Source: Oopsacas minuta (taxonomy: Eukaryota; Animalia; Porifera). From it: DNA of 64,000 nucleotides. Position numbers and translations under genes: made by a program. This document shows positions 3,297 through 54,843 of this stretch, one piece after another (within the stretch, counting starts at the first letter, position 1; each line of letters begins with the position of its first letter). Below the pieces are notes generated by a model. It was not told the origin of the DNA, did no database searches, and was given only the letters and a program-made list of their open reading frames with translations. The DNA lies in assembly GCA_024704765.1 (NCBI GenBank), contig JAKMXF010000328.1, forward strand, positions 119,864 through 183,863. The letters are read 5' to 3'.

Positions 3297-5063
3297 CACA
3301 GTGGCTCTAAATGGCTATCCGTAGGCTTTAGGGTCTTGGGTACATTTAAAGTGCATAAAATGTAGTTTGTTTCTATGGGTTATTGCATATAACTAGTTGA
3401 TTGAGAGGAAAAATATTTTTGGTATGGCTTCTATTTTTTGAGTTATGATGACGTAATCACAATTTGCAGAAAACATATAAACCAGCGTAAATCTATTTAG
3501 GTTGGAGTTAGGGTTATATAATATATTATTTACTAATGGATTAATCGCTATTTAAAGCAGATTGAACTGATTGAGCATTGTATATGGCTTTTGTTTTTCT
3601 TATGATGACGTAAGCAAATTTTATAGTTACTTTCTGGAAATATCTGTGTTATTCGAGTTATTTAGATATGTGTTCACACTAAATTTATCTACCAAGGGAT
3701 AAAGTGTTTAGATTATCAACCAACGTTCATTTTGCTGTATTATTACTGCAATAGCAATTTTATCGAAGAAAAGAATATAATTGAAATTTTAAATTTGTCA
3801 GTAACATGACCGTTTTGCGTGTTCTTAATAACCAACGGTTAATTTTTCCTTAAATTTTATTTTACTATTGTAGTCTTACTGCGCTCCCAATGTTTCGTCC
3901 TGTAATGGACTGCTCAGTTGTCTCGCCTTTTCCGCAATACACATCAGATGGATCAGTGTTAATTAACGTTTACTCCTTTGCGAGTCGCTTTTCCATTATC
4001 TGGGCTCTCCATAATTGGATTGCGTAGCCTGAATAGCTTCGGACAGAGGTCCCACAAAGTTCGATGTACCTGCCTTTGAGCGCTTCGAAAACTATTTGTA
4101 TGGAAGTTGAAGAATGAAGGCGAGACGTTACTCAAATATTTAACGAATTAAATAATATGTCTTAATCGTTAGTCTGGTGAAGCAAATTTGTGCTTTTCAG
4201 CCTGCCTGTATGTCCGATTCCTCTACATTGCTTACACTCAAGGACATTACTAAACCTATCAGAACTGGACTGATATTACGCTTACTGGCAGTATCACGTC
4301 AAGAAATTCAATTCGTTGATTCTTCTCCGAATTTAGGAGAATTCGCCATCTGAAAGATCAAATATCTGTATGAGGGAATCGACAACTGTTCTGATTGATG
4401 GTTGAGATAGAAAAAATCAAGTGCATCATGGTTGTTCATTTAGAATTTGAAATAATTGCTAGAAATTTCGTAGATAAAGTAGTTTATTATGAATTGCTTG
4501 AATTCTGAAATTCTTAAATTAACTGGTCGCTCATTTTAAAATGCTTGGTGTTCATTTGGAGGATGTTGTGGGAGGCCGGATTTAGTTCAAATTATAGATA
4601 ATATTTTAACAAATCACCCTAAAACTTGAAATTACCTGGCCATAACTAGCCACTGTGAGTTTGAGGTGTAATTAGACCAAGGTAATATGTGTCCAGACAC
4701 ATTATGTAACGTCAAAATTATCTGAACCATGGAGGAAATATTCAAAGTGAAATGCTTAGCTCTTATCATAATTGTGAAGAGTATATTCTGGACCAATAAT
4801 AGGTTAAAACTTTGAGCTGTCATTCTCATGAGTATCTTTTGATAGCGAGAATTATATGCCTATGTATAAATATATAATAGAGGTGAATAATGAATTCAAT
4901 TATAGCTATCCACTAAGAATGACATTTGATTAAAAAGTAATAGGAAATTTTTCAAGAAAATTATGATTCCCAGGTTTCAGACTATGCTGAATTTAATGAT
5001 AAATTTTCGAAAGCTTATGGGATGATGAAAAGTTGCCCTAAAGCCTATGTTGAAACCACTGTG
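3297..5063. mobile_element. Non-autonomous Transib-like DNA transposon
   Basis: Termini CACAGTGG...CCACTGTG, and both ends carry TAGGCTTTAGGG internally. The 5-bp flanks CAGTG / TGGTG are reconcilable as a CGGTG TSD after CpG decay. No intact ORF. Confidence 0.6.
3887..3951 (-). ncRNA. Degenerate type III hammerhead ribozyme
   Basis: Minus strand GUGU-A / UUG..CAA / CUGAGCA / GUCC-AUUACA-GGAC / GAAA-CAU. Homologous to the 17071-17138 motif, but the core reads CUGAGCA (G8 to C). Confidence 0.7.
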
Positions 5064-5101: not shown

Positions 5102-5431
5102 TTGACTTCAATTTCCTGGCATCCTACTGCTGAGAATATTATTGCTTCCGTATGTCATGACTTCACTGTTATTTTTTGGAGGATTGATACTGGAAAGATG
5201 ATATTTACTGCCCAACACACAGATTATATCTTTTCTTTTGCTTGGAATTTCGATGGTAGTTTATTTGCGACTGCTTGTAAAGATAAGTTCATTCGTTGCT
5301 GGGATGCTCATAAGCGAAAGCAATTATGGGAAACCCAAGGTCTCAAGGGAACTATGGGTTCGAAATTGTGTTTTAGTGGCTCTTTAAACTACGTCATTTC
5401 GACTGGATTCTCTAGAGATCGACTAAGAGAG
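5102..5431 (+). CDS. coro: Coronin, internal exon (WD40 repeats)
   Basis: Acceptor ...ttttatttag|TTG and donor GAG|gttggt, both phase 0. Translates LTSISWHPTAENIIAS...FAWNFDGSLFATACKDKFIRCWD...STGFSRDRLRE, matching coronin motifs (WHPTA-N, ATxCKDK, TGFSR). Confidence 0.9.
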
Positions 5432-7096
5432 GTTGGTTCCATATCTTCTTATCCATCTATTACTTAGTCATTGTATATGTAGCCCATTTTCACAATTTTG
5501 ATTATTTTCATGTTCACAATCTTCATTAACCACTTATCAACAAAATTCCTTTCTGAATGAAGAGGAGCTGGTAGGATCAATTTTATATTTTTATCTTTAA
5601 TAGTGTCCTAAAATTTTGGAAATTTGAAAATTTGTATTGGTACTATTCATATTTCGAATTTCCAATCATAGGAGGGGGTCATGGTTAAGATTGTCGTTCA
5701 ATGTGTTCTAAGTTGTCACCAAATTCAATTTGTCCACAGGTAAATCTATTCAATTGAACATTATTCCTATATTCGAGATTATGCATAACTTCTTCTACAT
5801 ACTTTACTCCTTATAGACTTTCTATTTCGTCATAAACCGCTGATTCTAACTCCTCATTGCTTGAAATGATCTCCCATTAATGTTTAGGGAACAGCTATTA
5901 CTCATAGTGAGCTATGTAGATAGAATATTGCAGCTGTGGTAGAGTAGAGGTTCTATTCTCTTTAGCATTCTCTCTTGTCAGTACTTGTGTGTGTTCTGGT
6001 GCATTATCATTGTGTAATTTCATTCCTTAATGTCGGTTTTAGGATGCTGAGTTTAATCTCTTCGAATGAAACCTTAAGACATACTTCTCACTTCTGTTAC
6101 CGTTTACCTGTTACTAATAGGCCAAATTTCAGTCTGATTACTATTAGCGAGCTTCGCTTGCTAGGTCGCTGCGACCACTTACTGCCTTATGTTTAGCTTA
6201 AGTATTAATTTAACAGCTAAATTCTTTATCCTTTTGGTCACTACTTCGCAGTGACACGGTAGGTGGAAATTTGTGGGAAAATGTATTTGAATTGCTTCGA
6301 AAATGAATTCTCCTTGCTTGAGTTACCCAGAAATCATATATCTAAACTGCAAATAGTACACTAGTTTATAAAATAATGTAGCGTATTGCGTTAATCTTTT
6401 ATCATGTCACATACTTAATCTTTTTTGTCAGATTAATTATACGCGCCACATGCAACATACCCTCTTAGCTTTTGGTTATTGCTCAGGTGACTAAGGGAAA
6501 AGTGATAGTGGTATATCCAAAGAATATATTGTCTAGAAGCAAATCGATAACTCTCACTTCGTTCAGATTAAGAAGAAATTTGTAAAATTGACCATCGAAA
6601 GGAGAGAATATTCCAGAAATACCAACTTGAAGGCATGGTTCGAATCATTGTTTTCTCTCTCTCTGGTGTTTCAGATTTGAGGCGAGACTTACATGATCCT
6701 GAAGCGAGTGCCCTTCCTAACCAGTCTAAAGTTACTTTCGAACAAGATGTCAAACATGTGCCTTTTAAATATATTGATGACTTGACAACTAAGTGTTTGA
6801 ATATTTAATTGGTTTCATTAATGTCATCTCAAAACGGTAGCTGAAAATCTCCTAAAACCATTACTGCTCACTTATTACTATTGTGTTCACAAAAGGAACA
6901 CGAATTCAAAAGTTTGTAATGCATGTGTCAGGATTGTTCGATCCATGTTTGACTCTAAAGTGCCCAGATATTTAGTTGAGTTGAAGTGCAAATTACGAGC
7001 TATATACCGCTCCCTTTACACGAATCCATGTTTTCATGGAAGGATTCCGAATAAACAGAATTGTTCATTTTATACTTTTTTAGTATAAACTGTAAT

Positions 7097-13086: not shown

Positions 13087-15371
13087 CGAGTGTTATCTTA
13101 GCAGCCGATTCAGCAGCCGATTCAAATCCCCACTAAAGTACCTTTTTCTCAAAAAGTATGGGTTCTATTTTGAAAAGAACCATACCAGTGTCAAGAAGAA
13201 AGTTGGTACATTTCATATCATCACTCATAATCGCCAAATTTGCATGATGAGTAAGCAATTTTGCATTACATTTTGGTCGAGGTTTTTTGTTAATATCTCC
13301 TGAAATAATTGTGCTGATAACTTCTCATTTTAATCATATTTACATCTCACTTGGTACATTGTGTATATCCAATTTGAAATCAAAATAATTATTTTTGTAA
13401 AAGTTATGAACGCCCGAACTTTACATAGGAATTACATAGACGACCAATTTGTACTATCAATAATGAAGTATGTATGACATTGCAGTGTACGTAAATTTTG
13501 ATAAGTATTTAGTATCATTTTCAATTCTATAGTTCTAATTCTATTGTGGTTTCTAGATAATAATCAAAATATAGTTGAAATATAGTAAATAACACAACAC
13601 CATTGTAATGACAGTTATCATACATTATACAAAACATTACTTTTTGAATAGAAAAGAGTAAACAAATCGGAAGGTATTACAAGATACTAATTACCCAGAT
13701 ATTATAGTTTGTCTCTCTACCTTTTCTGTATTGAACTGATTGATGAACTAATGAGAAATACTGATTGAATTTCCCTTGTCTATTAGAACAGGCTAAACCT
13801 AAAACAGGTGGTACTATTTATGCAAAATCTTTACAGCTATACGTATAAGGAAGAGTAACAAATGTCTTGACCAGATAAGATTTGAAGTGATGATCAACAC
13901 TTCGATGTAATTATTAATGCTAGAATGGTAAGAGAATCGAGATTTAACTCCAGGACATGGCTCAAATGAATGCTCCAAAATAGATAGTAGCTTCTTTCTG
14001 ATTCAAATTTGTACAAATTGTAAAGTAAATGTTTGTAAGAGAGATTTGTAGATTTAATTCCTAGATTGATTAAGATAATTGTAATGATAAGAATATAGAT
14101 TTCATGTTCATTGTTTACTTTACTATGAATATATCTTCCAGAACTTTACATATTGGTGTTGTGTTAGTTTCCAACTCCTGTGTAATATAATCCAGCTTTT
14201 AAACGTATCTTGGTTAGAGACAGGTCATAGAATTGTTCCATATAATCCAACTGTCGATACATATACGTATATGCTTACATTTGTGATTTTTGTCGCAATC
14301 AATTTACATATTTAGATGAGATCTCACAAAATATTCAAGATTCATTTATACAAAATATTTATTGTTTCACTAATAATCTTGTTGGTAAATATATAATTTT
14401 CGCTGCCATAAATTGAAACCAATGATTAGGTTGCTTTTAATAATAAATTCGGACACATTTGCATATAACTACAGTCAACTCCCCTTATATCGGAAACAAG
14501 GAACCGCAATAATCATTTCTATATACGCGGATTTCAATATAACCGATAACATTTATGTTTCTTTAACGATTTGTGACTATATTTGTATAATCTCAGACTT
14601 CGATATAGCGAGGATTTCTAATTATCCACGTTCGATATACCGGGAGTTGACTGTGTAACATTACAAAATTAATTAAGAAAGATGCTCACATAATTGAATT
14701 GAAATGAAATTTAGTAGGACTGTCGTATGAAGAAAATTTGTGGAAGAAATGAAGTTGAAATAAAATGAAGTTGAAGAATATCAAAAGTATTAAGGTTGTG
14801 AGAAACGAAATAAATCAATTACAGTATTACAAATGCTTGTTGATTGATATTACATTCTTAATTTAATACTAAGTTCAAAAATCTAAACTGACATAACTGG
14901 CCCTAATAATTGAGAAGGAATACATTTGACCTCAAGAATTTAGTCATCATAAGTAAATTTACACAAAGAATATTCAAGTAATCAATACATAGCTACAAAT
15001 CATACAAATCATCAAGCAAAAACTGGTCGTCTATGTAATTCCTATGTAAAGTTCAGGCGTTTATAACTTTTTCAAAAATAATTGTTTTGATTTCAAATTG
15101 GATATACACAATGTACCAAGTGAGATGTAAATATGATTAAAATGAGAAGTTATTATCACAATTATTTCAGGAGACATTAATAAAAAACCTCAACCAAAAT
15201 GTAATGCAAAATTGCTTACTCATCATGCAAATTTGGCGATTAAGAGTGATGATATGAAATGTACCAACTTTCTTCTTGATACTGGTATGGTTCTTTTCAA
15301 AATAGAACCCATACTTTTTGAGAAAAAGGTACTTTAGTGGGTATTTGAATCGGCTGCTAAGATAACACTCG
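13087..15371. mobile_element. Non-autonomous element with ~350-bp TIRs (CGAGTGTTATCTTAGCAGCCGATTC), TA-flanked (Tc1/mariner-like)
   Basis: 13087-~13440 is the reverse complement of ~15020-15371, and TA follows the right end. A second, inverted copy is split across 38046-38950 and 45690-47090. Confidence 0.8.
14472..14652. mobile_element. MITE (CAGTCAACTCCC TIR) nested in the long-TIR element; also present in the second copy at ~38750-38930
   Basis: tacagtcaactcccc...gggagttgactgtg termini. Confidence 0.75.
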
Positions 15372-15892: not shown

Positions 15893-17070
15893 GTAATCCC
15901 TTGACAATTACCTTATTTATTTTTGTGATCTATTTCTATTCCAATACTATTGTAGACCTGTTGCGTAGGATTTTGACCCGTAATACAAAATCCTAATAGC
16001 ATATCCATGGTGCAGGTCAAAATCCTACGATGTAATATATGCGTAGGATTTTGACCCGCATCAAAATGTATTACACTAATTACAGCCGTAGGATTTTGAC
16101 CTGCATATAATGTATTATTGTCGTAGGATTTTGACCCTAAAGTAATCTTACTTCTCTGTCATTTGACTTTTTCGATTTCCATACACTTTCATTACGTAAT
16201 TACCACTAAATGTACATAATGTAATTCAACTTTAGACTTGCCATACGTATACGTGACTGAATAAACAAGTCAATTTAGAGTTGGATTCTAGAAAGTAGTG
16301 AATTTGTTTGATAACATGTAAACTATGTTCCCACTACATATAACAAATTTACAATATGTATAATTATCCAAAATGCCAAATATAGACAGGTGTATATAAA
16401 TATTTTATGATAATATTACTTGGACAGAAGGTGGTAGGTATTTGATAATTGTATTTAATAACTCATAATAAATAATATAATTTAACATGTCAATCTATAT
16501 ATTGCAATATATTCTATCAAATAATAAAAATATTACAAGCATTAGCATGATAATGAATATTCTGAATATCTTAAGTACGAATTGTAGGCGATTTCATCAT
16601 TGCCCATTTCTCTATACTTCCTGACATGCTTTAAGGAATAACCACTGAAATATGTTCATCTAGTGGACAAGCGTAGACTATGCATTTGTTAAGGGAGTCT
16701 TGGTATAATGTTGATACACATATAGAGTTGAGGTGAAAACCGCGAGCCTCTGGCACGCTGCATACTCCTGGAAAACACTAGATTTCTATAAACAAAACAA
16801 GTCAGCTCCGGTGGCCTCCTCCTTCCCCTTACAGCCACCCCCTAACACTAAACGTTTAACGTTAACCTCACCTTGTTTATGTGTGCAGTGTTGGAGCGAG
16901 TTTAATGTGATTGCGATCACACCAAATTTGACTCTAAGCTGCAACATAAACGAATATGTACAATAAATCGTAATTTAACAGACACACGAGGAGCTAACGG
17001 ACCCCGAACGGCCACAGACAAGGAGAAATTAAAAATAAAAAATAGATAAGAAACTCGCTTGTATCTGATT

Positions 17071-17138
17071 CCATGCTGTATTTCGTCTCGGCGTAGACTC
17101 GTCAGTTGCGCTGCCTTTCTCGCAATATACTTAGATGG
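17071..17138 (-). ncRNA. Type III hammerhead ribozyme
   Basis: Minus strand CCAUCU-AA-GUAU-A-UUGCG-(AGAAAGGCAG)-CGCAA-CUGACGA-GUCU-(ACGCCG)-AGAC-GAAA-UAC-AG-C-AUGG. It has a complete CUGANGA/GAAA core, perfect stems I, II and III, and an AUA cleavage triplet (cut between 17126 and 17125). Confidence 0.88.
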
Positions 17139-17310
17139 TAGAGTGATGATATTCGCCACTGGGGATGTGCTGTTGCAGGTCGCGTTTCCATTATCTGGGC
17201 TCACCATGATAGGGATTGCGTTGCCTGAATAACTTCGGGCAGAGGTCCCCACAAGGTTCGATGTACCTTGCCTTTGAGCGCTTTCGAATAATGGAAAGAG
17301 TCGTGAATCG

Positions 17311-20300
17311 CTAAGAATTAGTCAGAAGAGTGCAAGAGGTAGAAACAGTATTGAGTGATCCGATGAAAGTGTCACAGTCCCAAAGTTGGATAATTGGTTC
17401 TCTCATTCCGTCATATTTATAGAATTGCCCGTTTTGGTAAAGGATTGAATAGAAGTGTCTATTACTCAATATGCTTAAGCCAGCAAGTTGGTAGTGAAGT
17501 GTCCGTTGGTTGTGACTGATGGTAAAGTGTTTGTCAATATCACTTGCAAAAATGTCTGGCAATTCGGGTAGATGTCCGATTTCAATTGTTAGCATGACAG
17601 GTATTGACTTGAATTGACCAGATATCCTCTCTAAGACAGCAGTAGTTGATCCACAAGACTTGCATTTAATAGGAACGAGACTTCGATTAACAGATGATTC
17701 CAGGTTTGTAATAACGCCTCCTATATTACTAATCATGGATTGTGTCTCAAGATACTGGTGCATTGGTGGCATTGGAAGATAGTGAAATATTTGTAGTTGC
17801 ACAAATCTTCTGTTCGTAAATATTTGATGATGTCACCCTCTGATCCAAAGAAATCGTAAGATCGTATCAATCCTGAGGAATCATAAATAACTTCAAGCCC
17901 AATTTTAGTAGCAACATATTCTCGAAGTTTCTCAAATTCACAATTAGCAGCCAATTGGAATATGTAGTGGAATTTAGCTTCAACATGTGTACTTCCGATT
18001 AACTTCAGTGAGTCTATGATGGTTGCTTTATTCGAACTAAGAATAGCCAATATATTGTCGATAGAACAGGTGTTAGATTGCACGATGTTGTTATACTCTC
18101 CTCCCCATTTAGGATATGGGATAAGATCTGATGCATTTTGTATAGATTGTTCTGGTATTTCAATGATCTCATGAACTTGCTCAGTCGGGAATATTAACTC
18201 AATTATTACTGGTAATAGAACAGCAATTGGATAGCCAAGATCTTTTCGTGTCTCTTCAAGTATTTCAGTAGGATAGGAGGAACGATATTCTGCGTACCAA
18301 TTATCGGCTGATACAGCAAGTTTCTCCTTAATCTCAAAATTTAGTTCGTTGGGTGGATGGTAAGAATATAGTAAATTCAATGAAGTTAGAGATGCAGCTT
18401 TTGTAGCGAGTTTCTCATGTAGTTGGGTTAAGTATGTGTTATTGACAAGAGCTGATAGTATTCGAGGTTTCAATTGAAGTAGCTCAGAGTCGATATTTTC
18501 ATAGATTGAGTGTTGTTGCGGTGTTTCAAATGTTTCTTCCATGGTATCCAGGTTCAATATATCATCCAAAGAATCTAAATACAAATAAATATGTGAAATG
18601 TAGGATTGCTATTACGTATTAATCGAATCAATACAGAACACAACTAGTTTATGTGTACTTAATCATGGGCTGAGTCAATTAGTTATAGTTCAGTACAATA
18701 TTGTCTCGCTAATGTATTTACCACTAGAAGGGAATTTGCAGGATCTTTTGGGCTTCTTTGATTTGCCTGTCTTCGTTCGAACCTGCCGTTTTTCGTTCAT
18801 CCGAGAATGATATTTTCTTGATAGATGGATAGGTAATTTTGTTGTTTTGCTATCTGGGTCTTTGCGAGCAACTAGGTGGCTTGGTTTAACTTCCTCTATC
18901 GTATATGGTCCCAAATATTTCTTTGCATCTTTTGTTCCTGGGAGTCGCTTGGCTTTCTTTATATTATGTACAAGTACCTCATCTCCTTCCACAAATTCTG
19001 ATCTAAAGTTTACACAATGATTATACAAAGAAAATAATGTGCCAATTACGTACAGTTTGTAACGATGCTAATTATATAACTAAAAGTAAGTGTTTTTGAA
19101 TTTAAGAATTCATATAATTGAGGAAACAATAAATTAGTTCCGATTCAAGATTATTTCATATTTATCGGATTATACAACAGTCAGTGAATTTAATTTAATT
19201 TTAGTAAGAGATGATGTATGAAATTCCAACATGTTACATCACACAAGAATGTGTTTCGTTATTTCTTACCTGTTGTGTTTAACTTTGCTGTCATATGTTT
19301 TCTTTTGAACTTTCTGACCTGCCTTGATGTTTTCAATAGCATTCATTTTGTCAGCTTTACGTGTGGAAGAAAGATTTTCTATCCATTCGTTATCAATTAT
19401 AGGAAAGTCAAATGGGCGTGGTTCGTTTGCATCCATTTGAATATTCTCATCTTCTGATACTTCTGCCTCTGAGATATCAGCTTCGGTTACTAATCCGGGG
19501 TTAGTTGGAGAAGTGATAAGATTGAGAAGGTTAGATGAATCAAAGTCTCTCCCAAACATGAGATAAAAGGGTGTGTAGCCTGTAGAGATTTTGGTTTGAG
19601 TATTTGCTGCTAGTACTGCTGTCTGTAATTTCTCTGTCCATTTAGTGTCCCCTTCAGATTGCATCTTGTTGATTTTTCTATTTGTAAAAGTGTTAAATTA
19701 ATTCAAAGCTATCTAATTATAAACGACGTCTATTAAACGTATGTAAGGCTTTGAATAGAGATATATTTATACTTAGCATCAATACTCACGTTTTCAATAT
19801 TCTGTTGTGTGACTCAACAAGTCCGTTACTTTGTGGGTGGTATGCTGTGGTTCTTCTGGTGTTGACATTTATCTTCTTGTGAAATTCTTGAAATTCCTAT
19901 TTTGGAAGTAAATAAGAGAACGATAACAATCTACTACGCGCATGTATTTAGTCTTGTACAGCAATAGTTAGAAAGATATGACGATTAATAAGTTAAATTT
20001 TCCATCCGAAGGTAGTAGCATTAATTCGGAAATTCTTATTTATTAGTATTTAACATAATTAAAATCCAATTTTCCACACGGTTTCTTAAATATAGCCATC
20101 AGGACGCACAATTTCCTACCAGGGTATATATTGAAGCAATGCGCTGACAATTGACAATGCAACATGTTACGTACGTATATCCAATATAGTAAGTTGTATT
20201 GTGTATCGGGAATAATTTACTTGGTGTATTTACAATTACTAATCTCGAGTATGTAAAAATATGAGTTACCTTGCTTGAGAATTCTGTTCCCTGATCATGT

Positions 20301-21623
20301 TGGAGGATGTTAGGTACAACGAACGAGAGATAAATTTCCTGTAAACAATCCAATATTTCTTTAGAAGTTTTAGTCTTGAGTGGTCGGGCAATTACAAATT
20401 TACTCAGGTAGCACACGATGACAAGAATGTGCTGAAATCCAAGTACAGTGCGAGACATATTGCATATGAGATCAATTCCATAATGACACCATGGTTCTTC
20501 AGGAGGAGGAATAGGTTGAAGCTCTCGTTGTGGCTGAGGAGGTAGAGCAGCAGAGGTTTGACAGTCATGGCAAGTTCGGATCTAGAACGGGAAATGATTT
20601 AATTGTCAGTTTGTAGTCCAGTCTAATGTAATTTGCTACGTTCCAGATGTCCCGCTAAATTAGCATTCCGTCCCGCTTTTTCTTCACTCAGGTTGGCAAA
20701 TATGTTTATGTGAAATACTCCCACTACCTATCCTAATTACTAACTACCGCAAGGGTCATTAGTTGTTAGATACATGGTTGGTTGGTTGTACCGCACAAAT
20801 AGATTTCCATATGATAAAATTGTATACCGGTATACTAAATATCATCAGATCGCACAATATTAATTTTACAATAGCACAAATAAAGCTGTATACAGTAGAA
20901 TAATTACAAGGTGAATAACCTCAAACTATAAAATACATGCTGTTCTCAGACTTAACAACCCCTTTTGCAAATTTCCCTGGATTTTCAAAATTTGTAATCC
21001 AGGGATCCCTGGAGGGTTGGTAAGTCTGTGTTCTCAGCCACATTTTCTTGGAAAATCATGTATGAAAGAAATACGTAATTTAGTAACTCACATAGGATCC
21101 AACATCATTGTATATGCCATTCCAATCATATTTATTTCGGATTCCATCAATGGTAGTATTGATTCCGGGATGAGTGACATTGTGATAGAATCCGATAATG
21201 TTGTCAATTTCTGAGACTAGTGGGATCTCCAAATATTTCACACAGCCATTTTTCTTTCTGAAAATCTACAAGAAATTATTTTAGTTAAACTCAGAGGTTG
21301 TAGGTAGCATTGAGGGGCAGAGGAGTCCCCCTAGCGTTTTCACCCTTCTCATCTCCCTATGGTACGCAAATTTAGTGAGGCAACTACATATCTGCCTCCT
21401 CGCAGATATGTAGTTGCCTCAAGATTTCTAATTATGTCCCGGAAATAAGTATAAATCAAAAATATCATTCAGGATTATACCTTCATTAGCTTATTCTCTT
21501 GAAAGTAAATCCCCTTGCACTTTCTGAGAAACTCTTCTTGCTGTAGCGATCACTCTTGATTTCCGGTGGGATAATATTCGTCTGGAGTTATCCACGAATT
21601 GCTTCATACTTTGTCGCATCCAT
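17311..21623 (-). pseudogene. Ginger transposase-protease gene, 7 exons: 21623-21481, 21265-21092, 20581-20270, 19896-19790, 19677-19270, 19002-18722, 18574-17311 (~900 aa)
   Basis: All six introns are GT-AG with matching phases (0,0,0,2,2,1). H-x3-H...CHDC finger; GIDL / HDQG / NGLVE (DD35E); TGYTPFYLMFGR; LGPY. Lesions: a stop and a 1-nt frameshift in exon 1, and a 1-nt frameshift near 17745. Confidence 0.88.
21376..21421. repeat. Perfect 20-bp inverted repeat with 6-nt loop
   Basis: TGAGGCAACTACATATCTGC-CTCCTC-GCAGATATGTAGTTGCCTCA, inside Ginger intron 1. Confidence 0.95.
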
Positions 21624-23316
21624 AATGAAAAATGTCAAAAGTAAATATAAGTGTTGATGTTGAAATCTAGAAACAAAGTAAGATGTTAGTATGTGCATTT
21701 GGGGAGTCCCACATGTATAAATACGAATACTATGTGACTAGGGATGAAATGTTGATATTACTTGATTTGCAATTGCTACTTGCGGGTCAAAATCCTACGC
21801 AACAGACCTCTCTATAATATTACTAGGGGGACACTGTCCGTTATGAATGAGATGACAACAATTATTCTATTTTTATATGAAATATCTATTTTGTGTATTT
21901 TCTTTAGCTGTTTTGGGCTAATAGTAATTGCTACATCTAAATTTCGGTAAATTCAAACGTTATGTTAGCATTTTTTTTCATTAGCCGGTTATGCCCATGA
22001 ACAGTCTATCTTTTAGTTAACTAGTACCTATCTTTTATTCAAATAGTATAATATATGTTTGGTCTAAAATTTTAATTGTCCATCATTTTGTTAGATGTTT
22101 CTTTTCGAACATGTGTGGCAAAATTATACTCCAATGTGTTTGTAGCGGTTCAGGAAAGTCGCAGTTTGGTGGAGCAAGTAAAACATAATATTTGGAAATT
22201 CTCTTGGTAATGTGGGTATGCATCAGCTTTTCGTATTTGAAGAGCATCAGCTCCAATCAACAAACTAAATTTGATCTTTAACAACAGACCGTAGCCTTCT
22301 CTATATAATTCGTACCATCAACCTCGAATTTTTAGACTAGGGATATAGTGGTGTACTATGAATTATATTAGTATACAGAATAGTTTCATATCGCAGAAAC
22401 AGTACTTTTATACCTAAGTAAATGTATTACAGACATGTAGAATATCATTTCACCTAACTAACAAAGCAAAAAATTGTCAAAATGTATCAATTTCTTTGCT
22501 TAGTAAGCATTATTGGGAGAATATGGCCCGATCTTTGATGAGCTGTAGAACGTAAAGTATCGCATCAAGGATTTCTAAGTTAATGTAACTTGAATATTAC
22601 CATATAGGGATCTATAGATGAAAATGCAATAATCCATTTCGATGTAATATCAAAATATATTACAAGGCATGGGAAATCGAGTATATGCTATAAATCGGTT
22701 ATAGTGAGTTTTGTTATATCATTGAGAGTTTCCGACTTGTAAATACATATTGACAAATTATCACCATCCATGGTGACAACTGTAACTAAAAGGCTGCCAA
22801 CTTAATCATGACAGATTTTTAATATGTTTTTACAAAAGCATCTTAACATCATTTCGAACATATCTTGGAAATCAAAGATGCGATATTTGACGTTCCACAG
22901 CTCATCAAAGATTGGGTCATATTCTCCAAATAATCCTTACTAAGTAAAGAATTTGGTACATTTTGATAATTTTTTGCTTTGTTGGTTTGGTGACATGATA
23001 TTCTACATATATCTGTAATACATTTACTTAGGTATAAAAGTACTGTTTGCGCGATATGGAACCATTCTGTATACTATTATATCCCTGGTACATCTAATGG
23101 TGGGCCTTACATAGCAAAGGCTATGCAATAGAAATACTTTTGACCACAAAATTTTATTGCAGGAGTTTAGTTATATCCAGTGAAATTTATGAGTATCTCA
23201 ATTTCTGTATTCAATTATCTCAACTTAATTTGGATACATGATTATCGGGAAAATCGCTTAGTGGAGATTTGTCCAAATTAAGTTTAAGTATAAGCAAAGC
23301 TATATGGCCAAAACTA

Positions 23317-24666
23317 CAGGGTGTATAATGATTGATGCCCTCTAATACAAGAATATTTATTAATGAAATGGGTTAAGAATATATAATAATTCATTTGCCT
23401 ATATATCCCCCCTTTAGTTTGATACATTTTTTGATGCGTTTGGGCATTCCTCTATACATTTTGTCCAAAATTTCCGGTTGGATTTGGGACTAAGCTAATT
23501 TTACCTTCCTGATCAGAATTTCTGTATTTGTTGAAGGTGCCATTGTATCTACCTCAGTTTGGAGAATTGACCAGAGGTTCACTATTGGATTTAGATCCGG
23601 TGAGTTTCCTGGCCAAATACCTTTAGCCCAAAAGCCTTTCAGGTTGCTCTTACACCATTCTTGGGAAATTTTTGCTTGATGCGCAGGTGCACCATCCTGT
23701 TGAAAGATGGATTTGGACATCTCTGGCAGCATAGCTATGCTTAAAACATTACCAGTTTTTCGCTTTCTTCGCATTGCAGAAAGGAGGGAATTCTTCAAAA
23801 TTTCTTCTGCATAGTATCCTGCTGTTATGGTTTGTCTTTTGGGAACAATATGTAATTCTGAGAGTGCACAGTAAGACATCATGCCCCACACATATATTTT
23901 GCTCGGAAATTTGACCCTCTTGACTGGTGGAATTTGTGAAGTATCTTTAGCCCAGATACGATCGTTTTGCCGATTCGGAGGGTGCAAAATTTCAAATGGA
24001 AATTCGTCAGAAAATAGGACACGTTTCCAGTCTTCAAGATTCCAATTTCTCCGTTCTTTACAGAAATTCAGCCTGGCCGCAAGCTGTTTTTCGTTCAGCA
24101 GCGGGTGTCGTTGTCGCTTATAGGGTTTAACTTGAAGGGTCTTCCTTAAATAATTATAAACCGTGCCATGAGTGATAGGAAATCCACTAGCAGTTATTCT
24201 CTTGGCTAGCTTTCGAGTGGATTGGTTTCTTTTACTTATTGATTTAGCCAAAATTATATTCACAACTCTAGGGATGGATGATTTTGGTCCACGGCCTCCT
24301 ATATTCTGAAGGGATTCCCCTTTCTTGTACCGACTCCACCAACGTCTGATTGTGCTAATATCTGGCCCTATTAACTTAGCGCATTTTCTTTGCGTAAATC
24401 CTGCTTCTAACATCCCAATAGCTCGATTTCGAGAAGATAGAGGATGCTCTTTGACCATATTTAATAGACTAATTTTCAAGAAAAAAGCAAATTTTAATTT
24501 TCGTATAAATATAGGCACGAGTTAGATGAAATAGTATTAAAGATTATGTGTATTGATAACTAAAAGGTAAGAGACTAAGATACATTAAACTAGATTCATT
24601 TTACTAGTGTAAATATAAAGGTTATTCTTAAATATGAATATAGCGCATCAATCATTATACACCCTG
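23317..24666 (-). mobile_element. Tc1/mariner-superfamily DD37E-type element, inactivated transposase (23391-24458)
   Basis: TA TSDs and TIR CAGGGTGTATAATGATTGATGC. The ORF has FSDE, QDGAPAH-37-PDLNPIV (catalytic E to V) and an in-frame TAG (probably from TGG) at 23490. Reading through gives ...KLKGGYIGK*, like the 426-1770 element. Confidence 0.93.
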
Positions 24667-35480: not shown

Positions 35481-38400
35481 GGAATGATGATAATATGCAA
35501 TCTAAGAAGTAACTAATTAACTACTAGGAAACTGTAATCCAAATTGCAATATCTGGTTAATATTGAATTCATACCCGCAAAATAGTTTGCTCATTTAGTA
35601 TTATTTTTAATGGACTTTAAGCGTGCACGAATAATTTTGGTAAGGGAGTGCATGCTTATTCTTATCTCAGGATCCAGGGAAATAATTTAGACAAATTCGC
35701 AATCAATACCCCGAAATTCATATTTTGATTTTACTAATTTCGGGTGGTGATTGCGAATTACAAGTCCTATTTCTTTCATCAAGTCACAATTTGATAATAC
35801 TCAACTTGAAAAATTGCTAAAAATAGGCATGAAATTCAGTATACGTATGTGACCATAATTATATTGAGTTGATTTTGAACTCTACCGTTATTGAGTTTCA
35901 ATAGATGCAGAATGAGCTCTGTGTAAGAGAAACTTATTATTTTATCATGAATTTGGGACTTACATCAAATATTGTTCATGCATGGAAAATGACTAAGAAT
36001 CAGCATTGTTTTACAAATACAGCGCTGATTCTGTTTCTATTGAAGCACAAACACTTTATGGTTATAAAATTCGAACAATTTTGTTGATGATTCTATCATA
36101 CTTTTCTGGAGTTTTTCAATATTTCGCCAACATTCTAGAAACTTTTTAGTATATATTTGAATTATAATTTGTTATTGTACAGATATCTAATACATTTCTC
36201 CGCCAATACGCGCCGTTTCTGCAATATAGAAATCATTTATATTTTGTTAAATCGGCTGATTTACCCCTAGTCCAAATCCACAAGTTACTGTTGGGCCTTA
36301 TATATAGTAGGTTATGTTATTATCTAGAGCTTGTAACACGCCTATATTTCAGCGTTATCACAGATAATAATGTACTAATGATACACAATCATAGATAGTA
36401 CACAACCAGAGTTTTGGTTATATATATCTATAATATTTATGTTGAGGGGTTTAAAAATTGAAAATCATTTCTTTGGTTTACAGTTGACTTTAAGGTATCC
36501 ATGGTTTGTAATTGAATAATGTTAAAGTGATTTGAGGAGAAATTACCAAGACTAATATTGCAAATAACCAGTATTTTAACCAGCCATAATCCCTGAAAAT
36601 GGAGTTATATACTTTATTTTGGTGCTAGCCTTCCTCCTCTCAAATTTTCATTAGCCTAAATCAGTAGATTTGTGACAAATTTTAGAAATTTTTATTCCAC
36701 GAAGTACTAAGTGCCGAGATCACTATCCTAAAACTCGACGTAGAACTCCAGCGTGGCCACAATAGGCCATTTAATGTAATTTGGATAGACCATGCATAAT
36801 TTAGTCGGAGTATTTCTGGCCTTATAGCGACCAATAGCACTACAAATTTAGCTGTTTAATACTTAAGCTAAAGACTACTAAATACCATTAACTGTCGACT
36901 CTCATACTTGGGTCTTCAAACTCGGGTCCATTGGTATCTCTAGAATTATCAAGTGACAAATGTTGTTAAATGTATTATTGCTGAATACGATGTCATATGT
37001 TGGAAGTCCATTGGCCACATTTCCTTTCCTAAATACTTATTAACTAGTGCTGAGTCCTCTTATCAGATGCGAGTATTAAATTTCTTGCTGTGCCACTTTT
37101 CGAATGTAAGTGCACAGTTGTCAGCTATGTGGGGATAGTGCATTTTTCACACCTCTATCGGAATAATTATCTTCTGATTCCATTTCTCAAATATTACAAA
37201 CATAGGAATCCAATTTTGTGGAGACATACATAGTAAGGTATTTGAGTAATTCGGACCTAAAGGAATCAATGTCTTTTCTTTAAATAGCACTTTATATTTC
37301 AAAAACCACAATACTGAAATTTGAGATTAATTAAGATCCATTGCTAGATATTGAAAGTTCCACATAGTTTTTCAAAGTACATACATTTGATGAAGTCACC
37401 GAAACGAAACTCTTTCAGAAGTCTTATAGTTTTAAATTTCTGCCAAATCCTAAGGATTTTAGAGTGGTTCGTTCATATATTTTTGATAATATACCTCATA
37501 ATATTATATTTCTACCCTGTCCGAAGCTCTCAGTTGTAATATTATACCAGTTATAACATCATGTCTTGCCTGGTGTTTATTATTTTCTGTGAAACCTTTT
37601 TAGATTCTGGAAAATACAAGAGAAAGTATTTATCATAAATTGTTGCATAGTCAATTGAGGCGTAATTCATCAAAGAATTCCTCTAGAAGATGCTGATTTC
37701 TTTACAAAGCTTGGAGCTTTTTCTTGCCCCACCCGCTTATTCAGGGGAAATTCACTAGTTTAAATTTACACTATTTTCCAGGAGCTCGCGAGAGGGCTAC
37801 TGAACTATCAATTCCTATATATTGTAGTTATCACTTAATATTGTATTAAGGTTTAAGCTTTTGATATATATTCTTTTGAATACATTAGAATTTAGAAGAA
37901 TGTGTTAATTTTAATTTATTGCCGAATCTTTTAGAATGTATCTAATTTGCTTCTGTTAATTCAGTTTACCTTAATCAAGTCAGCCAGACAATTTATAATT
38001 TGGCCATTTAATTCTTCTGTGAAGTATACACATGCAGATTGCACACGAGTGTTATCTCAGGTAGTCGATTCAAATGCCCACAAAAACAACTTTTCTCAAA
38101 AAATATTGGTTCTATTTTGTAAAGAAACATACCAGTGTAAAGAGGAAAGTTGGTACATTTCATATCATCGTTTATAATCCCCAAATTTTACATAATGAGT
38201 TAGTAATTTTGCATTACATTTTGGTCGAGGTTTTTTATTAATATCTCCCAAAATAATTATGATAACAACTCATCATTTTAAGCATATTTACATCTCACTT
38301 GGTACATTGTGTATATCCAATATGAAATTCTAATAATTATTTTTGAAAAAGTTATCAACCCCCCAACTTTGCATTGCAAATACATAGATGACCAGTATTT

Positions 38401-40680
38401 GCTAGATGATTTGTATTCTTTGTAGCTTTGTATTGATTGCTTGAATATTCTTAGTGTAAATTTACTTACCTTGACTAAATTCTTGAGGTCGAATGTATTC
38501 TTTCTCAATTATTAGGACCAGTTATGTCAGTTTAGATTTTTTAACTTTGTATTAATTAAGAATGTAAATATCAATCAACAAACATTTGTGACACTGTAAT
38601 TGATATATTTCGTTTCTCACGACCTTAATACTTTTGATATTCTTCAACTTCATTTCTTCCACAAATTTTCTTCATTACAACAGTCCTACTAAATTTCATT
38701 TCAATTCAATCATATGAGTATCTTTCTTAATTAATGTTGTAATGTTACACAGTCAACTCCCGGTATTTCGAACATGGATATTTAGAAATTCTCGCTATAT
38801 CGGTGTCTGAAATAATACAAATACAGTCACAAATCGTTAAAGAAACATGAATGTCATCTGTTGTATCGATATCGCGTATATTGAAGTAATTATTTCGGTC
38901 CCTTTTTTCCTATGTAAAGGCAGTTGACTGTAGTTATATGCAAATGTGCCAGAAATTAGTCGTTCTTTTAGCATAGGTTGTGTTCTTACTTCCAACCAAG
39001 ACATCTCTGGAACAATTTGTAACTGCAATTCCCCAACTAGGCTACAATGATTTTGATAAACCTAAGGTAGCCTTGTTGGATAACGGAGACAGCGAAGTGG
39101 TGAAGTAAGGATGGGGAAAGTTATCCATTCTCATATTCAATAAGAATAAGCCAAACACACGTGCTCTTCTCTACTTAAAATGGAAACTAAATTGCAATCA
39201 TTTTCAGGATTATATAAAACAAAGTATGGAAGGTAACAACCGTAAGTTCAATTGCGATTCCGGCACTGATATATTCCAGTTGGCTATAGAAAACGTTACC
39301 ACCAGGTTAGATTCAGATAGTATTTAGATCCTAGTAATATTAGTAGTGGTCCATTAGATACAGATTTTAGTGTAGATAGCTTGGAGCGGGAAGTGTTGAA
39401 TAGCAAATTCTTAGTCTTATTGGCATTTGGTTGCGAACAACCTGAACTATATAGTTTGAGGAGTGCCCTGTCTTCTTCTCTTCCTCAGACTGAGGTCACC
39501 GATACCCTCTTTTGGACACATTGATTGTGATAATCTTCTATGGTTAGAGGAACTGAAATTTTAGGGTCAGAATGTCCACGCATTAGTGGCGAATTCATGC
39601 TCATTAATTGGATAATCTATGAGGAGTGCAAAAAATTTAATAAGTTTCTATATGAGCACTAAGAAACTTCAGGCTTGTTAAGAGAGATAGTTGCTAATTT
39701 GAAGCATGGATATTTGTTGGCAACACCAACTGTCGTATTTTTGATTTGTTTGGAAATGCTTATCTCATTTTCACAGTTGCACACTCGAGGAATTTCTTAA
39801 CCTTGCTTTATCCATTCGAGCAAATAAGGATCTAATATTTTCATTTCATTCAACTCTATCTGAAAAACTGGGCACGGAATTCAGTTGTTAGTTGATTCAC
39901 ATCCACATATGTCATCTAAACTTTCTCTTGATATTGGTCACTCAGAAACTAGTGTTGTCATCAATAAATATAACGTTAATTTTGTGTCACTTGTCTCAAC
40001 CCTAGATGATGGTGATATTCTGAATGAGGTAATCATTGACGAGTCCACCACTATGGAAAAGAGTACGGGTAGCTTATTACTTAATTTTATCAAGTGGGAA
40101 AATTTATTAGAATCGTGAGCGACCGTGTTATGACTTTAAAAGATTGGGTTAACTTATTTAATTCCAATTTGGAAGCAATATTTCATTGTGACTTTGTTTT
40201 AAATACCACAAAATAACGAAATCTAAAAGTAGAAAACTGAGCAATTGTGTTTTTATAGCAAATGCAGAGTGTAAATTTCGCGATTTTTACTTTTAAATTC
40301 ATTATTAACAAGAATCCTCTAGAATGTCACACCAATCATTGTATTATTGTGAATTGCATAGTTTCTGGTACCCTATCTGATGAACATTTAGATGATAACA
40401 TCTTTTACGCGAGAAATTTGTGTAATTCGGAGGCGCTTCATTTGTTCGAATTTGCATGTTATCATTTGTTCGAAATAATGAGGTTGTCATATGTTCGACT
40501 AATCATTTGTTCTACTGGTGGAAATTGGGGGATTTCAAAGATAGCACGGGATCATCACGGGATATTTATTAGGTTATTTAGCAAAAAAGGTTGTATGAAG
40601 GAGGAAATGGGGATATTTATACTAACTACATGTTGATGAATGTTTTGTTCTGATTGTTGTGTACTGATCTGGGATGGCAG

Positions 40681-43085: not shown

Positions 43086-46000
43086 GATGGCAGGTATTGT
43101 ATTTAAAAGATGGCCATGAGATCACAGTATTTTTACCTGTTGTTAGTTGTGGTAAAACTCACCCTAAGTGGATCTGTGTTTTTATATTTGGGGAAATTTG
43201 GACCTGGTATTTTTCTCGATTTTATGCTATTTTTGAAGTGTCTTCTTTGTTTTATAGAAAATTTAGAAGAAGATTGATAATGTTGCAAAAGATGGATGTG
43301 CAAAGGTAGAAAATTTGCACAAACTGTTGTAGAAATCGCTGGATTCGGAAATACTAGTCGAACATATGACAACCTCATTATTTCGAACAAAATGACATCA
43401 TACAAATTCGAACAAATTAAAGCGCTACTTGTAATTCTAATAGGGAAAATGTAGTAACACAAGTAGCAAACACATCTATAAGTAAATATTTCTATAACCA
43501 ATTCGAATCTACAGATAATAGAAATTCAGCGCTTAATTTCGGTAACCTAATAAAATTCAAAACGCTGATTTATTAAGGATGGAAATGATCTGTCAAGTTA
43601 CAGACTCTACTGATAATTGGAGTTAATTGATTAGTTAACAGCAGTATTATCGAATGCTATAGTGGGTAGTAATATTAGAGGATAATTCAGTAATTAGGAC
43701 ATAACCCTTTATCTTCATTCATATACTGAAGACCAAATTTAAATATTAAAATGTTTTGAAGATCAAAGCAAATTCTTCACGTAGATGCTACTGGCTCAAT
43801 CATTCGAAAAATTGACCCTTCCCTGCACAAAGTATTTTATTATGCTCCCACAGTACAACATCCAACTTGTTCTACCATTCTCGTACCTCTGGCAAAGATG
43901 ATCAGTTCTGGTCATACTAGCGCTGAGATTAGCTATTTTCTACACAAATGGTATCTTGATGCAAAGAAAATCTTAGGTTATAATATTAACATAGGATGAA
44001 TTGAGATAGAATTCAGCTGGGCGTTAATTCATATTGTGTGTAATGCTTTTCTTAAATGTGATATCGATACATATCTTGATTAATGTTGAGATAGAGTGGA
44101 TACAAATTCTGCCAATCAGGAATTAGGATTATAAGTGATTCTCCATTTATGTTCTGCCCATATAATACATGGTATTGACTTTCACATTCATAGGAAATTT
44201 AAGTTAAGTAAAGAAGTGAGGAGTTGTTTTTGTATTTCTTTCGATATCTGGTGCGTTGTACTAATATTACTCAAATAAATTCTGTGTTTACTTCCTTGTG
44301 TTATGTGTTTAAAAGTAAATATATAAATGAACATGTATTAACCAATATTAAAACATTGGAGTATTATATTAGTGGCAGTTATTCTGATTTGGTTGATACA
44401 AATGAAAGTTTATACGATCAGGATAGTGATAATGGTCCCATCGATATTAAGGATGGTAAGACCCTAAGAGACATATCTCCCTTTGGCAAACGTTTTGCAT
44501 ATATAAGTAAACAATGTGAAAATGCTATCAACAATAATCACACCAAATTATTTGATTCGAATCCTTCTATTATCTTAACCTTATAGAATATATTTTAACC
44601 CACTACTTAACTATTCTGCCATTATGGAGTGGTATTATATTAGGTCCCCACAGTTTTCAGTTGGAAATAATTATTCGCATTATAGTAACGCCATTGTAGA
44701 GAACTTGATGCGTATAGTTAAATTAGTTATTTGAATTCGAAATCAAATTTGAGGCCTGGAGATTTCATTAGAGCATTATATCCTGGTATAACTAGTAGAG
44801 TTTCCGCTTTCAATTTTGCTTTTCATCCCAGAACTAATATAACTTTAAAGGTTGTAAGCGAATAAGAGATATTTCAGAAGAAAAATATAGTTAAGAATGA
44901 TCCAGAAAAAAAGAAACAGTATTGTGGCTATTTGAAGTCGAAAACATATGAATTTCCTCAATTTAATAGAGATAAAACTATCGTAAAAGATAAATTAATC
45001 CCTATTAAGCGTCAGAAGTTGTCTACGTTACGTAAGATTTGAAATCATCAGAAATTTAGACTGCGTCAATTATTACTGATGAAGAATTGGTAGAGTCAAG
45101 TATAATACGATATATTGTACCAAGCTTTCGTCCACCACACATTGAATGGCAAATTGCTACCTGTAAGAAATGGAAACTTCATTATGGTAATCAGATTGTC
45201 TATTCTTTAGATAATTTTTTTGATAATGGTGAAGGATTATATGGGTATAATCCCGGAACAACAGAAACAATATCAGGTGATGGAAACTATTATTTTTCTA
45301 TAATTTCTTATCTGATAACAGGTAGTAAAACCTATTATAAAGAATTACGTGCAATTATCGTCGAAAACATACTTGGCATATTAAGTACGAGTTGTCATGC
45401 GTTTTTGCATACTATGTATGATTATACCCAAGGGAATTTTAGGAATATTCAGGATTGGGTAAATAAATTGGAGATTAATTTGGTTGGGAAAGAGGATACC
45501 CACTTAGGGGTATTTGCAACTTCGTTGTTATCTAATATATATATTTGGGTGTTTTTGGGCCCTACTGGAACTCGTTGGGCTGGGTTTTCAGTTAATGGAT
45601 CAAGTTTTGATCAATTTTTAAAGGATCCAACTTCAAATGGTTTATATATTCAGAATTTAGGTAATCATTACCTGCTCGTACTATCTCTAGTTTATTCTTC
45701 AAAGCAACCTAATCATTGGTTTCATTTTATGGCAGCGAAAATTACATATTTACCAACAAGATTATTAGTGAATAATCAAAATTTTATATAAATGAATCTT
45801 GAATAGTTTGTGAGGAATTCTATTAAAAAACATTTTGTATAAATGAATCTTGAATATTTTGTGAGATCTCATCTAAATATGTATATTGATTGTGATAAAG
45901 ATAAAAAATATAGGCATATACATATATGTATCGACAGTTGGATTATATGGAACAATTATCTGACGTTTTCTCTAGCCAAGTTACGTTTAAAAGCTGGATT

Positions 46001-47287
46001 ATATTACACAGGATTTGGAAACTAACACAACACCAATATGCAAAGTTCTGGGAGATATATTAATATTAAAGTAAACAATGAACATGTAATCTATATTCTT
46101 ATCATTACAATTATCTTAATCAATCCAGGAATTTATCTCTAAATCTCTCTTACAAACGTTTATTTTACAATTTGTACAAATTTGAATCAGAAAGAAGTTA
46201 CTATCTATTTATGGAGCATTCATTTGGAGACCCATCTCCTGGAGTTAATTCTCAATACTCTTGCCATTCTGGCATTTACAATTACATATCGAAGTGTTGT
46301 TCATCTCTTCAAATCTTATCTGGCCAAGACATTTGTTACTCTTCTTTATATAGCTGTAAAGATTTTGTAATAGTACCACCTGTTTCCAGGTTTAGCTTGT
46401 TCTAATAGACAAGGGAAATTCGATCAGTATTTCTCATTAGTTCATCAATCAGTTCAATACAGAAAAGATAGACAGACAAACTATAATATCTAGTTAATGA
46501 GTATCTTGTAGTACTTTTCGATTTGTTTACTCTTTTCTATTCAAAAAGTAATGTTTTGTATAATGTATGATAACTGTCATTACAATGGTGTTGTGTTATT
46601 TATTATATTTCAACTATCTTCTGATTAATATCTGGAAACCACAATAGAATTGGGACTATAGATTTGAAAATGATACTAAATACTTATCATAATTTACGTA
46701 CACTGTAATGTCATACATACTTCATTATTTATAGTATAAATTGGGCGTCTATCTAATTCCTGTGTAAAGTTCGTGCGTTCATAACTTTTTCAAAGATAAT
46801 CATTTTAGTTTCAAATTGGATATACACAATATACCAAGCGAGATGTATATATATGATCAAAATGCTAAGGTGTTGTTACAATTATTTTGAGAGATAATGA
46901 CAAAAAACCTCGATCAAAATGGAATGCAAAATTGCTTATACCTATCAAGTAAAATTTGGTGATTATGAGTGGTGATATGAAATGTACCAACTTTCCCCTT
47001 TACACTGGTATGGTTCATTTCTAAATCGAACCCATACTCTTTAGAAAAAGTGTTTAGGGGAATTTGAATCGGCTGCTAAGATAACACCCGTAGATTGCAC
47101 ATACAGATACATCATTTCCCCATTTAGCATTATATTTTAACGATTTTTGATTATTTTCTTTATTGTACACAAAAATATTCTTATCTAACTTAGTTTTACA
47201 TGCTACCAATACATTAGAGCTGAGTATCTGACTGAGAAATCGAATTTCGCAAAGATTTCACCCTAATTTCAATTATGTATTATACTC

Positions 47288-54242: not shown

Positions 54243-54484
<242 letters not shown>

Positions 54485-54843
54485 ATAATAATAATAATAA
54501 AATCTTTCCGGTAGGAGACAAAATTTGTCACGATTTGGGATGAGAGACAAATATATTACTAACATGGCCTTATGCTCAAATTGCAATAAGATCATCTTAA
54601 ACACATATATTAGGAAAATACTTTGGTGAAGCTGTTGATAGTCGTTATCTGTATCTACATAAATAGCAAGGTGGTGCAACTGAATAGTTCAATATTCGGT
54701 TACCAACCGAATATCAGTATTCATATTCTGTATGAGTAAGCAAATATTATCAGTATTCGATAAGACAGCTATTCATTAATACTGATATTCGGTTCCCTCG
54801 GTTTCAACCTCGATAAATATGTATAGAAATTTACAGTCTATAT

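Follow-up and report, generated by a model that had tools for sequence, protein, structure and literature searches.

A conserved non-coding domain beside a type III hammerhead ribozyme in unrelated DNA transposons of the sponge Oopsacas minuta

Hammerhead ribozymes of eukaryotes have been described in retroelements, satellites and a small number of host genes, where their role is mostly unclear. One example from a host gene is the discontinuous hammerhead in the 3′ UTRs of rodent Clec2 genes, which is able to lower mRNA expression. Non-polyadenylated 3′ ends of Pol II transcripts are formed in other ways: MALAT1 and MEN-beta combine a triple helix with a tRNA-like structure that is cleaved by RNase P, and histone mRNAs carry a stem-loop. 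Among mobile elements, plant LTR retrozymes have a type III hammerhead in each LTR, and metazoan non-LTR retrozymes consist of tandem copies with type I motifs (bioRxiv 10.64898/2026.07.22.740005). In Penelope-like elements and Terminons the hammerhead lies in the 3′-terminal non-coding part and is thought to shape the 3′ end of the transcript (PMC6431247).

Here we analyze a hammerhead and an accompanying domain in a 64-kb stretch of the Oopsacas minuta genome (positions 119864-183863 of contig C328, from an assembly of 61.5 Mb and ∼34% GC), which we call the window. NCBI proteins assigned to this glass sponge match ORFs of the region at 84-95% identity. Hammerhead and domain form a cassette that resembles retrozymes in placing a hammerhead in a repeated, mobile-element-associated non-coding unit beside a folded-looking RNA, and its ribozyme is of type III, as in the plant forms. 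Unlike LTR retrozymes, the cassette has one ribozyme and no LTR-like direct repeats, and is internal to cut-and-paste DNA transposons; unlike metazoan non-LTR retrozymes (tandem repeats of ∼170-400 nt, type I), it is of type III and forms no tandem arrays; and unlike viroid-like RNAs of the Avsunviroidae type, it carries a hammerhead in one polarity only. Nothing at the cassette points to circular RNA or reverse transcription, a further difference from retrozymes.

The likeness to Penelope-like elements and Terminons lies in the position of the ribozyme, in the 3′-terminal non-coding part of a transposable element. Those elements are, however, retroelements with minimal type I motifs in their terminal repeats, whereas the cassette combines a type III motif with a separate domain of ∼145 nt in DNA transposons. 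As in Clec2, the hammerhead would lie in the 3′ UTR of a protein-coding mRNA, but the Clec2 ribozyme is part of a host gene, lacks a conserved partner domain and does not move between gene families. By analogy with MALAT1, MEN-beta and histone mRNAs, the proposed cut would be made shortly past a structured element, which would then protect or activate the 3′ end so formed; here, in contrast, the cut would be self-catalysed, there is neither a U-rich/A-rich triple-helix signature nor a tRNA-like fold, and the function is putative. Literature searches turned up hammerheads in retrozymes, Penelope-like elements and Terminons, and no paper that places one in DNA transposons of the cut-and-paste kind. 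The genome paper of O. minuta gives a figure of 15.4% for DNA transposons and mentions neither ribozymes nor Ginger or Transib.

The cassette and its host elements

The sequence that first drew attention, 5′ of the ribozyme, makes up two-thirds of a non-coding RNA cassette of ∼220 nt; a type III hammerhead follows downstream as the remaining third (Table 1). In the Ginger-type element the hammerhead has its full catalytic core (CUGACGA, GAAA, predicted cleavage after AUA); loops close its helices I and II, and helix III, just 4 bp long, is open. The Rfam model Hammerhead_3 (RF00008) gives 19 bits (E 0.46), below its gathering score of 48.5, and the scan of the window with Rfam returned nothing at gathering level. 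The core pattern has 74 matches genome-wide against two in the control, and the core is intact too in sister copies of the Transib-like element and in a third family. Helix II reads GUCU/AGAC, GUCC/GGAC or GUCC/GGGC according to family, and helix III GUAU/AUAC or GUGU/ACAC between families; these are compensatory changes. Across an alignment of 17 sequences helix III is 100% paired, with two pairs changed on both sides, and helix II contains one such pair.

Table 1. Coordinates of the cassette, its parts and its host elements (positions of the window unless a contig is given).
Feature	Position	Strand	Remark
Shared non-coding cassette, ∼220 nt	17078..17297	minus	domain + linker + hammerhead
Conserved domain, ∼145 nt	17152..17297	minus	from Ginger/Transib consensus comparison
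Outer stem, 5′ strand	17297-17288	minus	start of cassette
Stem P1 (proposed)	17297-17288/17194-17185	minus	
Stem P2 (proposed)	17279-17276/17202-17199	minus	
Stem P3 (proposed)	17270-17265/17257-17252	minus	
Stem P4 (proposed)	17249-17246/17215-17212	minus	
Stem P5 (proposed)	17241-17234/17229-17222	minus	
Conserved tail	17184-17152	minus	mini-hairpin P6 at 17178-17170
Variable linker	17134..17151	minus	3′ end is the 5′ strand of hammerhead helix III
Type III hammerhead	17075..17133	minus	predicted cleavage between 17126 and 17125
Ginger-type host element, 5.85 kb	15959..21804	minus (transposase)	cut-and-paste DNA transposon
Target-site duplication GACC, 4 bp	15955..15958; partner 21805-21808		Ginger element of window
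Left terminal inverted repeat, perfect 22 bp	15959..15980; partner 21783-21804	plus	Ginger element
Subterminal repeats, ∼35 bp	16040-16137		Ginger element
Transposase stop codon TAG	17311..17313	minus	Ginger element
Second host, Transib-like	3297..5063	minus	deletion derivative of 3.6-kb element
Degenerate cassette copy	3880..4105	minus	inside Transib-like element
Third-family loci	C59:23.2-23.7k; C66:1366.0-1366.5k; C244:620.9-621.4k		
Third-family loci (continued)	C301:161.8-162.3k; C316:78.0-78.6k; C346:2.6-3.0k		

The original prediction held that ∼220 nt (17068-17290) are homologous to 3885-4090 although the flanks are unrelated, and both parts are borne out. Positions 17040-17330 align with 3860-4130, and BLAST of the window's two copies gives 87.9% identity over 116 nt (E 9e-33). 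Better-preserved Transib-like copies match 17078-17288 at 82-85% over ∼215 nt, with E down to 3e-64, and a 6-nt match (TTCCAT) just upstream extends the shared unit to 17297. As to the flanks, 17068-17300 lies in the 5.85-kb Ginger-type element and 3885-4090 in the Transib-like element. The outer stem and hammerhead helix III mark the two limits of homology; GC content is 0.50 within the cassette and 0.34-0.37 in its surroundings. On its 3′ side the conserved block extends ∼33 nt beyond the hairpins originally listed, to 17152. With its sharp homology ends and signs of selection (see below), the cassette answers to the discrete ribozyme-bearing module, common to unrelated DNA transposons, that had been proposed.

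A 291-nt query around the cassette matched at least 40 places in the genome, 32 of them at ≥93% identity over the full length. The Ginger element around it, whose extent (∼15958-21809) was set by comparison with four other copies, is present in at least 30 genomic copies of 93-99% identity. Its ORF pieces match Pfam Integrase_H2C2 above cut-off (21080-21241, 31.3 bits) and rve below it (20099-20458, 27.7 bits, E 3.4e-6), and its termini are TGTTG...CAACA. Target-site duplications elsewhere in the family read GACC or GCTC, with one copy flanked by GCGC/GCCC. The hallmarks of Ginger1 are TGTNR termini, a 4-bp target-site duplication and a gypsy-type integrase (PMC2836005), and the host element fits this description in its integrase, TGTNR-rule termini, terminal inverted repeats and 4-bp duplication. 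It departs from published Ginger1 elements in the length of the inverted repeat (22 bp against 40-270 bp) and in the target (GNNC against CCGG) (PMC2836005).

The last Ginger ORF (17311-17802) terminates where full-length homologues have their C-termini, and for this reason we take the TAG at 17313-17311 to be the real stop codon. From it, 13 nt lead to the outer stem and 22 nt to the conserved block. Beyond the hammerhead, the 1.1 kb to the end of the transposon (15959-17074) are AT-rich (GC 0.34) and the most variable part among Ginger copies.

The C-terminal ∼430 aa of the Ginger transposase (17311-18584, minus strand) have no Pfam match, although they are conserved in many ENA ORFs at 41-60% identity. 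An NTCS.DN cysteine motif and a late histidine-containing block suggest that this region may be a papain/USP-like protease. A frameshift or intron at ∼17733-17802 interrupts it in the window copy.

The Transib-like element has the termini CACAGTGG.../...CCACTGTG, of the CACAGTG type. One copy (L037) is flanked by a clean 5-bp target-site duplication, TCATG; that of the window copy is decayed. The minus-strand ORF of a long copy shows a weak Pfam RAG1 match (20 bits, E 2.2e-4), which falls short of the 25-bit cut-off and spans no more than profile positions 555-602. Because its copies are only 75-85% identical, the family is taken to be old. The window copy has a mutated hammerhead core (CUGAGCA) and has lost 14 nt of the tail, whereas sister copies L037-L041 retain the intact core.

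In a third family the cassette adjoins an OTU-protease gene, in the same order and orientation as in Ginger. The ORF just upstream encodes an OTU-like cysteine protease that is 56-68% identical to P0026, an ORF from the public assemblies described below. Over the 65 nt probed, the third-family domain departs from that of Ginger in two respects: a single change in a hairpin loop, and a single C-to-U substitution that leaves a G.U pair. A scan for MULE transposase (PF10551) around the third-family cassettes found no match within a few kb, and a scan for RAG1 found a single possible neighbour, 4 kb off.

The cassette has the same orientation in all families, on the transposase sense strand, and is 3′ of the ORF in Ginger and the Transib-like element. 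A 25-mer of the domain, searched genome-wide with up to three mismatches, occurs at 79 places (control: 0), and at 65 of these a hammerhead core follows on the same strand 90-127 nt downstream. The spacing between domain and ribozyme is 96-97 nt in Ginger, 102-104 nt in the Transib-like element and 107-127 nt in the third family. Those places with a domain only that were inspected (C40, C244, C53, C222 and C333; L043, L044, L047, L048 and L050) are truncated or decayed transposon copies.

The window contains several further repeats. Two Tc1/mariner-type transposase remnants (DDE_3, HTH_Tnp_Tc3_2) lie on the minus strand at 499-1568 and 23490-24518, and repeats related to their flanks at 2075-2375 and 22288-23081. 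A MITE-like or foldback element of 2.2 kb (13112-15358) has 344-nt inverted arms that are 96% complementary, and related pieces are found at 38089-38958 and 45691-47051. A tandem array of ∼40 copies of a 9-nt unit occupies 54165-54556, its centre 98% regular. Right after the end of the Transib-like element, a WD40-repeat ORF fragment (5102-5467, plus strand) is probably an exon of a host gene.

Conservation and folding of the domain

Majority consensuses were built for the ∼230-nt non-coding cassette only, for comparison among families. Between the Ginger and Transib consensuses the domain differs at 8 of 137 positions, the hammerhead at 14 of 56, and the linker at 7 of 18 plus indels (Fisher test: domain against hammerhead p = 3.5e-4; domain against linker plus hammerhead p = 1.3e-5). 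Among Transib-like copies diversity is 0.072 in the domain and 0.115-0.146 in the flanks and linker; the domain is kept as well as the transposon termini. Among Ginger copies the values are 0.036 for the domain, 0.028 for the ORF and 0.053 downstream; a mutational cold spot was rejected on the grounds that the domain matches the ORF.

The domain also occurs beyond this assembly, and here the evidence consists of translated ORFs, that is, the open sense frame reported by public gene callers, rather than of nucleotides. A search with the domain's pseudo-protein returned 8 ORF clusters, and an exhaustive profile search 16 representatives at E ≤ 1e-10 in ENA and NCBI assemblies, whose contigs reach 2.5 Mb. 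Similarity among these ORFs starts where the conserved block starts and ends at its tail, and both flanks differ from ORF to ORF. In P0026 and P0033 an OTU-protease ORF (39 bits) runs into the domain. The best match of P0026 in the O. minuta assembly, on third-family loci, is only 65% identical, and P0026 must thus come from another genome. Its amino-acid identity to the copy on C244 is 64% in the protease part and 90% in the domain part; for the copy on C59 the figures are 56% and 85%. P0067, a distant Ginger C-terminus followed by the cassette, matches the window at 38% in its coding part and 73% in the domain.

Since a non-coding stretch outlasts the protein sequence that adjoins it, the domain is likely to be under purifying selection as nucleic acid. 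We infer that this selection acts on its primary sequence and is stronger than that on the ribozyme.

Exact-pattern scans of JGI metagenomes with a domain 21-mer gave no match, nor did a 24-mer in GTDB genome contigs and IMG/VR. Metagenome contigs scanned with the alignment of the Ginger C-terminal region gave 204 pattern matches, none of which was confirmed.

How far the conserved sequence is also a conserved structure is less clear-cut. The hairpins listed in the original prediction are all in the sequence and in the minimum-free-energy fold of either strand, but the sense-strand fold does not outdo shuffled sequences, and the description of the domain as highly structured was not upheld, its thermodynamics and covariation both being weak. 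The sense-strand fold has −42.4 kcal/mol (z −1.35; 16 of 200 shuffles equally good) and that of the plus strand −55.2 kcal/mol (z −2.19). Double-sided changes were sought in P1-P5 among 17 sequences from three lineages and none was found; the changes there are all one-sided, mostly wobble-compatible. The outer stem in its perfect 10-bp form, TTTCCATTAT/ATAATGGAAA, is private to the window's Ginger copy, and every other readable Ginger copy has a C.A mismatch. Its 5′ strand is not evident in several ORF-derived variants, although UUUCC is kept in distant Ginger lineages.

The single compensatory pair outside the ribozyme is in the 3-bp mini-hairpin of the tail, where U-A in Ginger is replaced by C-G in Transib and a U.G intermediate is implied by ORFs of other assemblies; another pairing register is possible, though it accounts for the changes less neatly. 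Pairing statistics favour neither strand overall: P1 is paired in 144 of 170 cells on the plus strand and in 115 of 170 on the sense strand, with the counts for Transib rows unreliable because MAFFT puts the outer-stem 5′ strand of these sequences two columns off. RNAalifold, run on the 17 sequences, returned a weak and different structure (−11 kcal/mol) in which the hammerhead was not recovered, and this result was set aside. The domain (17150-17312, both strands) has chance-level matches only in Rfam 15 (E 1.3 and 8.5), and ARAGORN finds no tRNA in it; an origin from a tRNA or SINE was rejected on both counts. A branched fold, as modelled, is plausible and compatible with the data. In the sequences compared here, the domain's strong signal is the conservation of its primary sequence.

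A putative 3′-end cassette and its alternatives

Our preferred reading, to which we give roughly even odds (a probability of about 0.5), is that domain and hammerhead together constitute a ribozyme 3′-end cassette, in which the domain would stay on the transposase mRNA after cleavage. The hammerhead would cut the primary transcript between 17126 and 17125. Given that the ribozyme is of type III, nearly its whole catalytic fold would depart with the downstream fragment, and the transposase mRNA would then end ∼26 nt past the domain in a 2′,3′-cyclic phosphate, without a poly(A) tail. In the Ginger element the cut would sever 15959-17074 from the mRNA and so free it of the terminal repeat downstream and of the flanking DNA. 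As the terminal element, the domain would render such an mRNA usable, whether by stabilising it, by aiding export or translation, or by controlling the cut. The transposons served have unrelated transposases; the domain most likely acts, therefore, on the mRNA through host factors and not on the chemistry of transposition. A self-contained 3′-end unit would work in any transposon, which could explain its spread among families by recombination.

What speaks for a 3′-end cassette is the position and orientation of the unit, the linkage of domain and hammerhead core at 65 of 79 places, the conservation of the domain, the compensatory changes in the ribozyme and the lack of a poly(A) signal ahead of it: AAUAAA and AUUAAA were sought between the Ginger stop codon and the ribozyme, and neither was found. 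The first AUUAAA past the Ginger ribozyme is at 16906-16901, ∼170 nt downstream, so transcripts might instead be polyadenylated there, in which case cleavage would just lower expression. Against a 3′-end cassette we count the fold no better than shuffles, the lack of double-sided changes in P1-P5 and of any preference for the sense strand, the several variants from other assemblies in which the outer-stem 5′ strand is not evident, and the fact that the longest ORF of the Transib-like copies stops ∼230 nt ahead of the domain.

An unlikely alternative is that the domain is a sensor (aptamer-like, or a platform for protein binding) or an insulator that sets the cutting of the hammerhead and thereby tunes the level of transposase. 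A sequence that is near-invariant even in predicted junctions and loops is typical of RNAs that bind ligands or proteins, and the linker that connects domain and ribozyme forms the 5′ strand of a helix III that has only 4 bp in Ginger. A GGGGA run that could pair with either of two UCCC stretches downstream suggests a possible switch. On the other hand, the linker varies in length and sequence (spacing 90-127 nt), which would be awkward for precise allosteric coupling, and there is no Rfam riboswitch match and no candidate ligand.

The domain could also be a passive passenger, a 3′-end fragment of one transposon that others captured and that does nothing, its similarity simply reflecting recent transfer. 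This we regard as improbable. It would accommodate both a structure without covariation and a module that is a fixed internal segment in each family, as a single capture in each would leave it. Recent transfer, however, predicts even similarity along the cassette, whereas divergence is 6% in the domain and 25% in the hammerhead; the old Transib family, with copies 75-85% alike, has a consensus domain 94% identical to that of Ginger; and other genomes keep the domain far better than the neighbouring coding sequence.

Somewhat less probable again is an element that works on the plus strand or as DNA, be it an antisense RNA hairpin, an internal promoter or a protein-binding site. The more stable fold of the plus strand, the higher P1 pairing count on that strand and a GGTTCGA box-B-like loop would suit such an element. 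The order and orientation relative to a sense-strand hammerhead, fixed at 65 of 79 places, would not, and the C-to-U changes in P5 at the level of families keep G.U pairs on the sense strand only; ARAGORN reports no tRNA and Rfam no family on either strand.

The original prediction itself suggested, as a possibility, a retrozyme- or viroid-like RNA, which would circularise and spread autonomously with transposons as its carriers, and this now appears very improbable. In its favour are a type III topology shared with plant LTR retrozymes and some viroids, the GC-rich and folded look of the neighbouring sequence, and the sharp limits of the module. A cassette contains only one hammerhead, however, and in a single polarity, and the Rfam scan of both strands gives the minus-strand motif only. 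Genome-wide, no pairs of same-strand hammerheads occur within 10 kb, and no tandem array, solo unit or two-ribozyme arrangement was found. No direct repeat flanks the module in its Ginger or Transib hosts, as a target-site duplication of its own would, and neither the place nor the orientation of the module varies with respect to the transposase or protease ORF ahead of it.

The remaining alternative, an exon encoding a shared C-terminal peptide, we dismiss as hardly tenable: the sense frame is open over 134 codons in the window copy and in all three family consensuses, is listed as protein by public gene callers (the 16 representatives above) and in P0033 continues the OTU-protease ORF without a stop, but such an open frame is not unusual at ∼50% GC, the domain's substitutions fall 3/3/2 on the codon positions with no third-position bias and 2 synonymous against 6 non-synonymous changes, which is not the pattern of coding sequence, the Ginger domain is out of frame with and downstream of the stop at the true C-terminus, and the hammerhead part is read in different frames by family. 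Several assemblies nevertheless carry the open cassette frame as a ‘protein’ (P0025-P0037 and P0066-P0073), and in P0033 it appears as a 48-aa tail on the OTU protease; such entries are probably artefacts of translating a non-coding RNA element.

What is new here is a hammerhead with a longer and better-conserved partner domain, fixed behind the genes of DNA transposons that have unrelated transposases. More tentatively than for the 3′-end cassette as such, and with the odds rather against it, we suggest that the domain represents a cis-acting RNA of a new class. It and the type III hammerhead would make up an mRNA 3′-end cassette that is portable and independent of poly(A), that has moved among unrelated cut-and-paste superfamilies in glass sponges, and in which the domain may protect the end, enable translation or act as a sensor that gates the cut. 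If true, it would be the first case of transposase mRNAs whose 3′ end is defined by a ribozyme. It provides a testable hypothesis for the role of a hammerhead, namely the making of mRNA 3′ ends, and the cassette would be a natural counterpart to the designs of synthetic biology in which a ribozyme is combined with a stabiliser.
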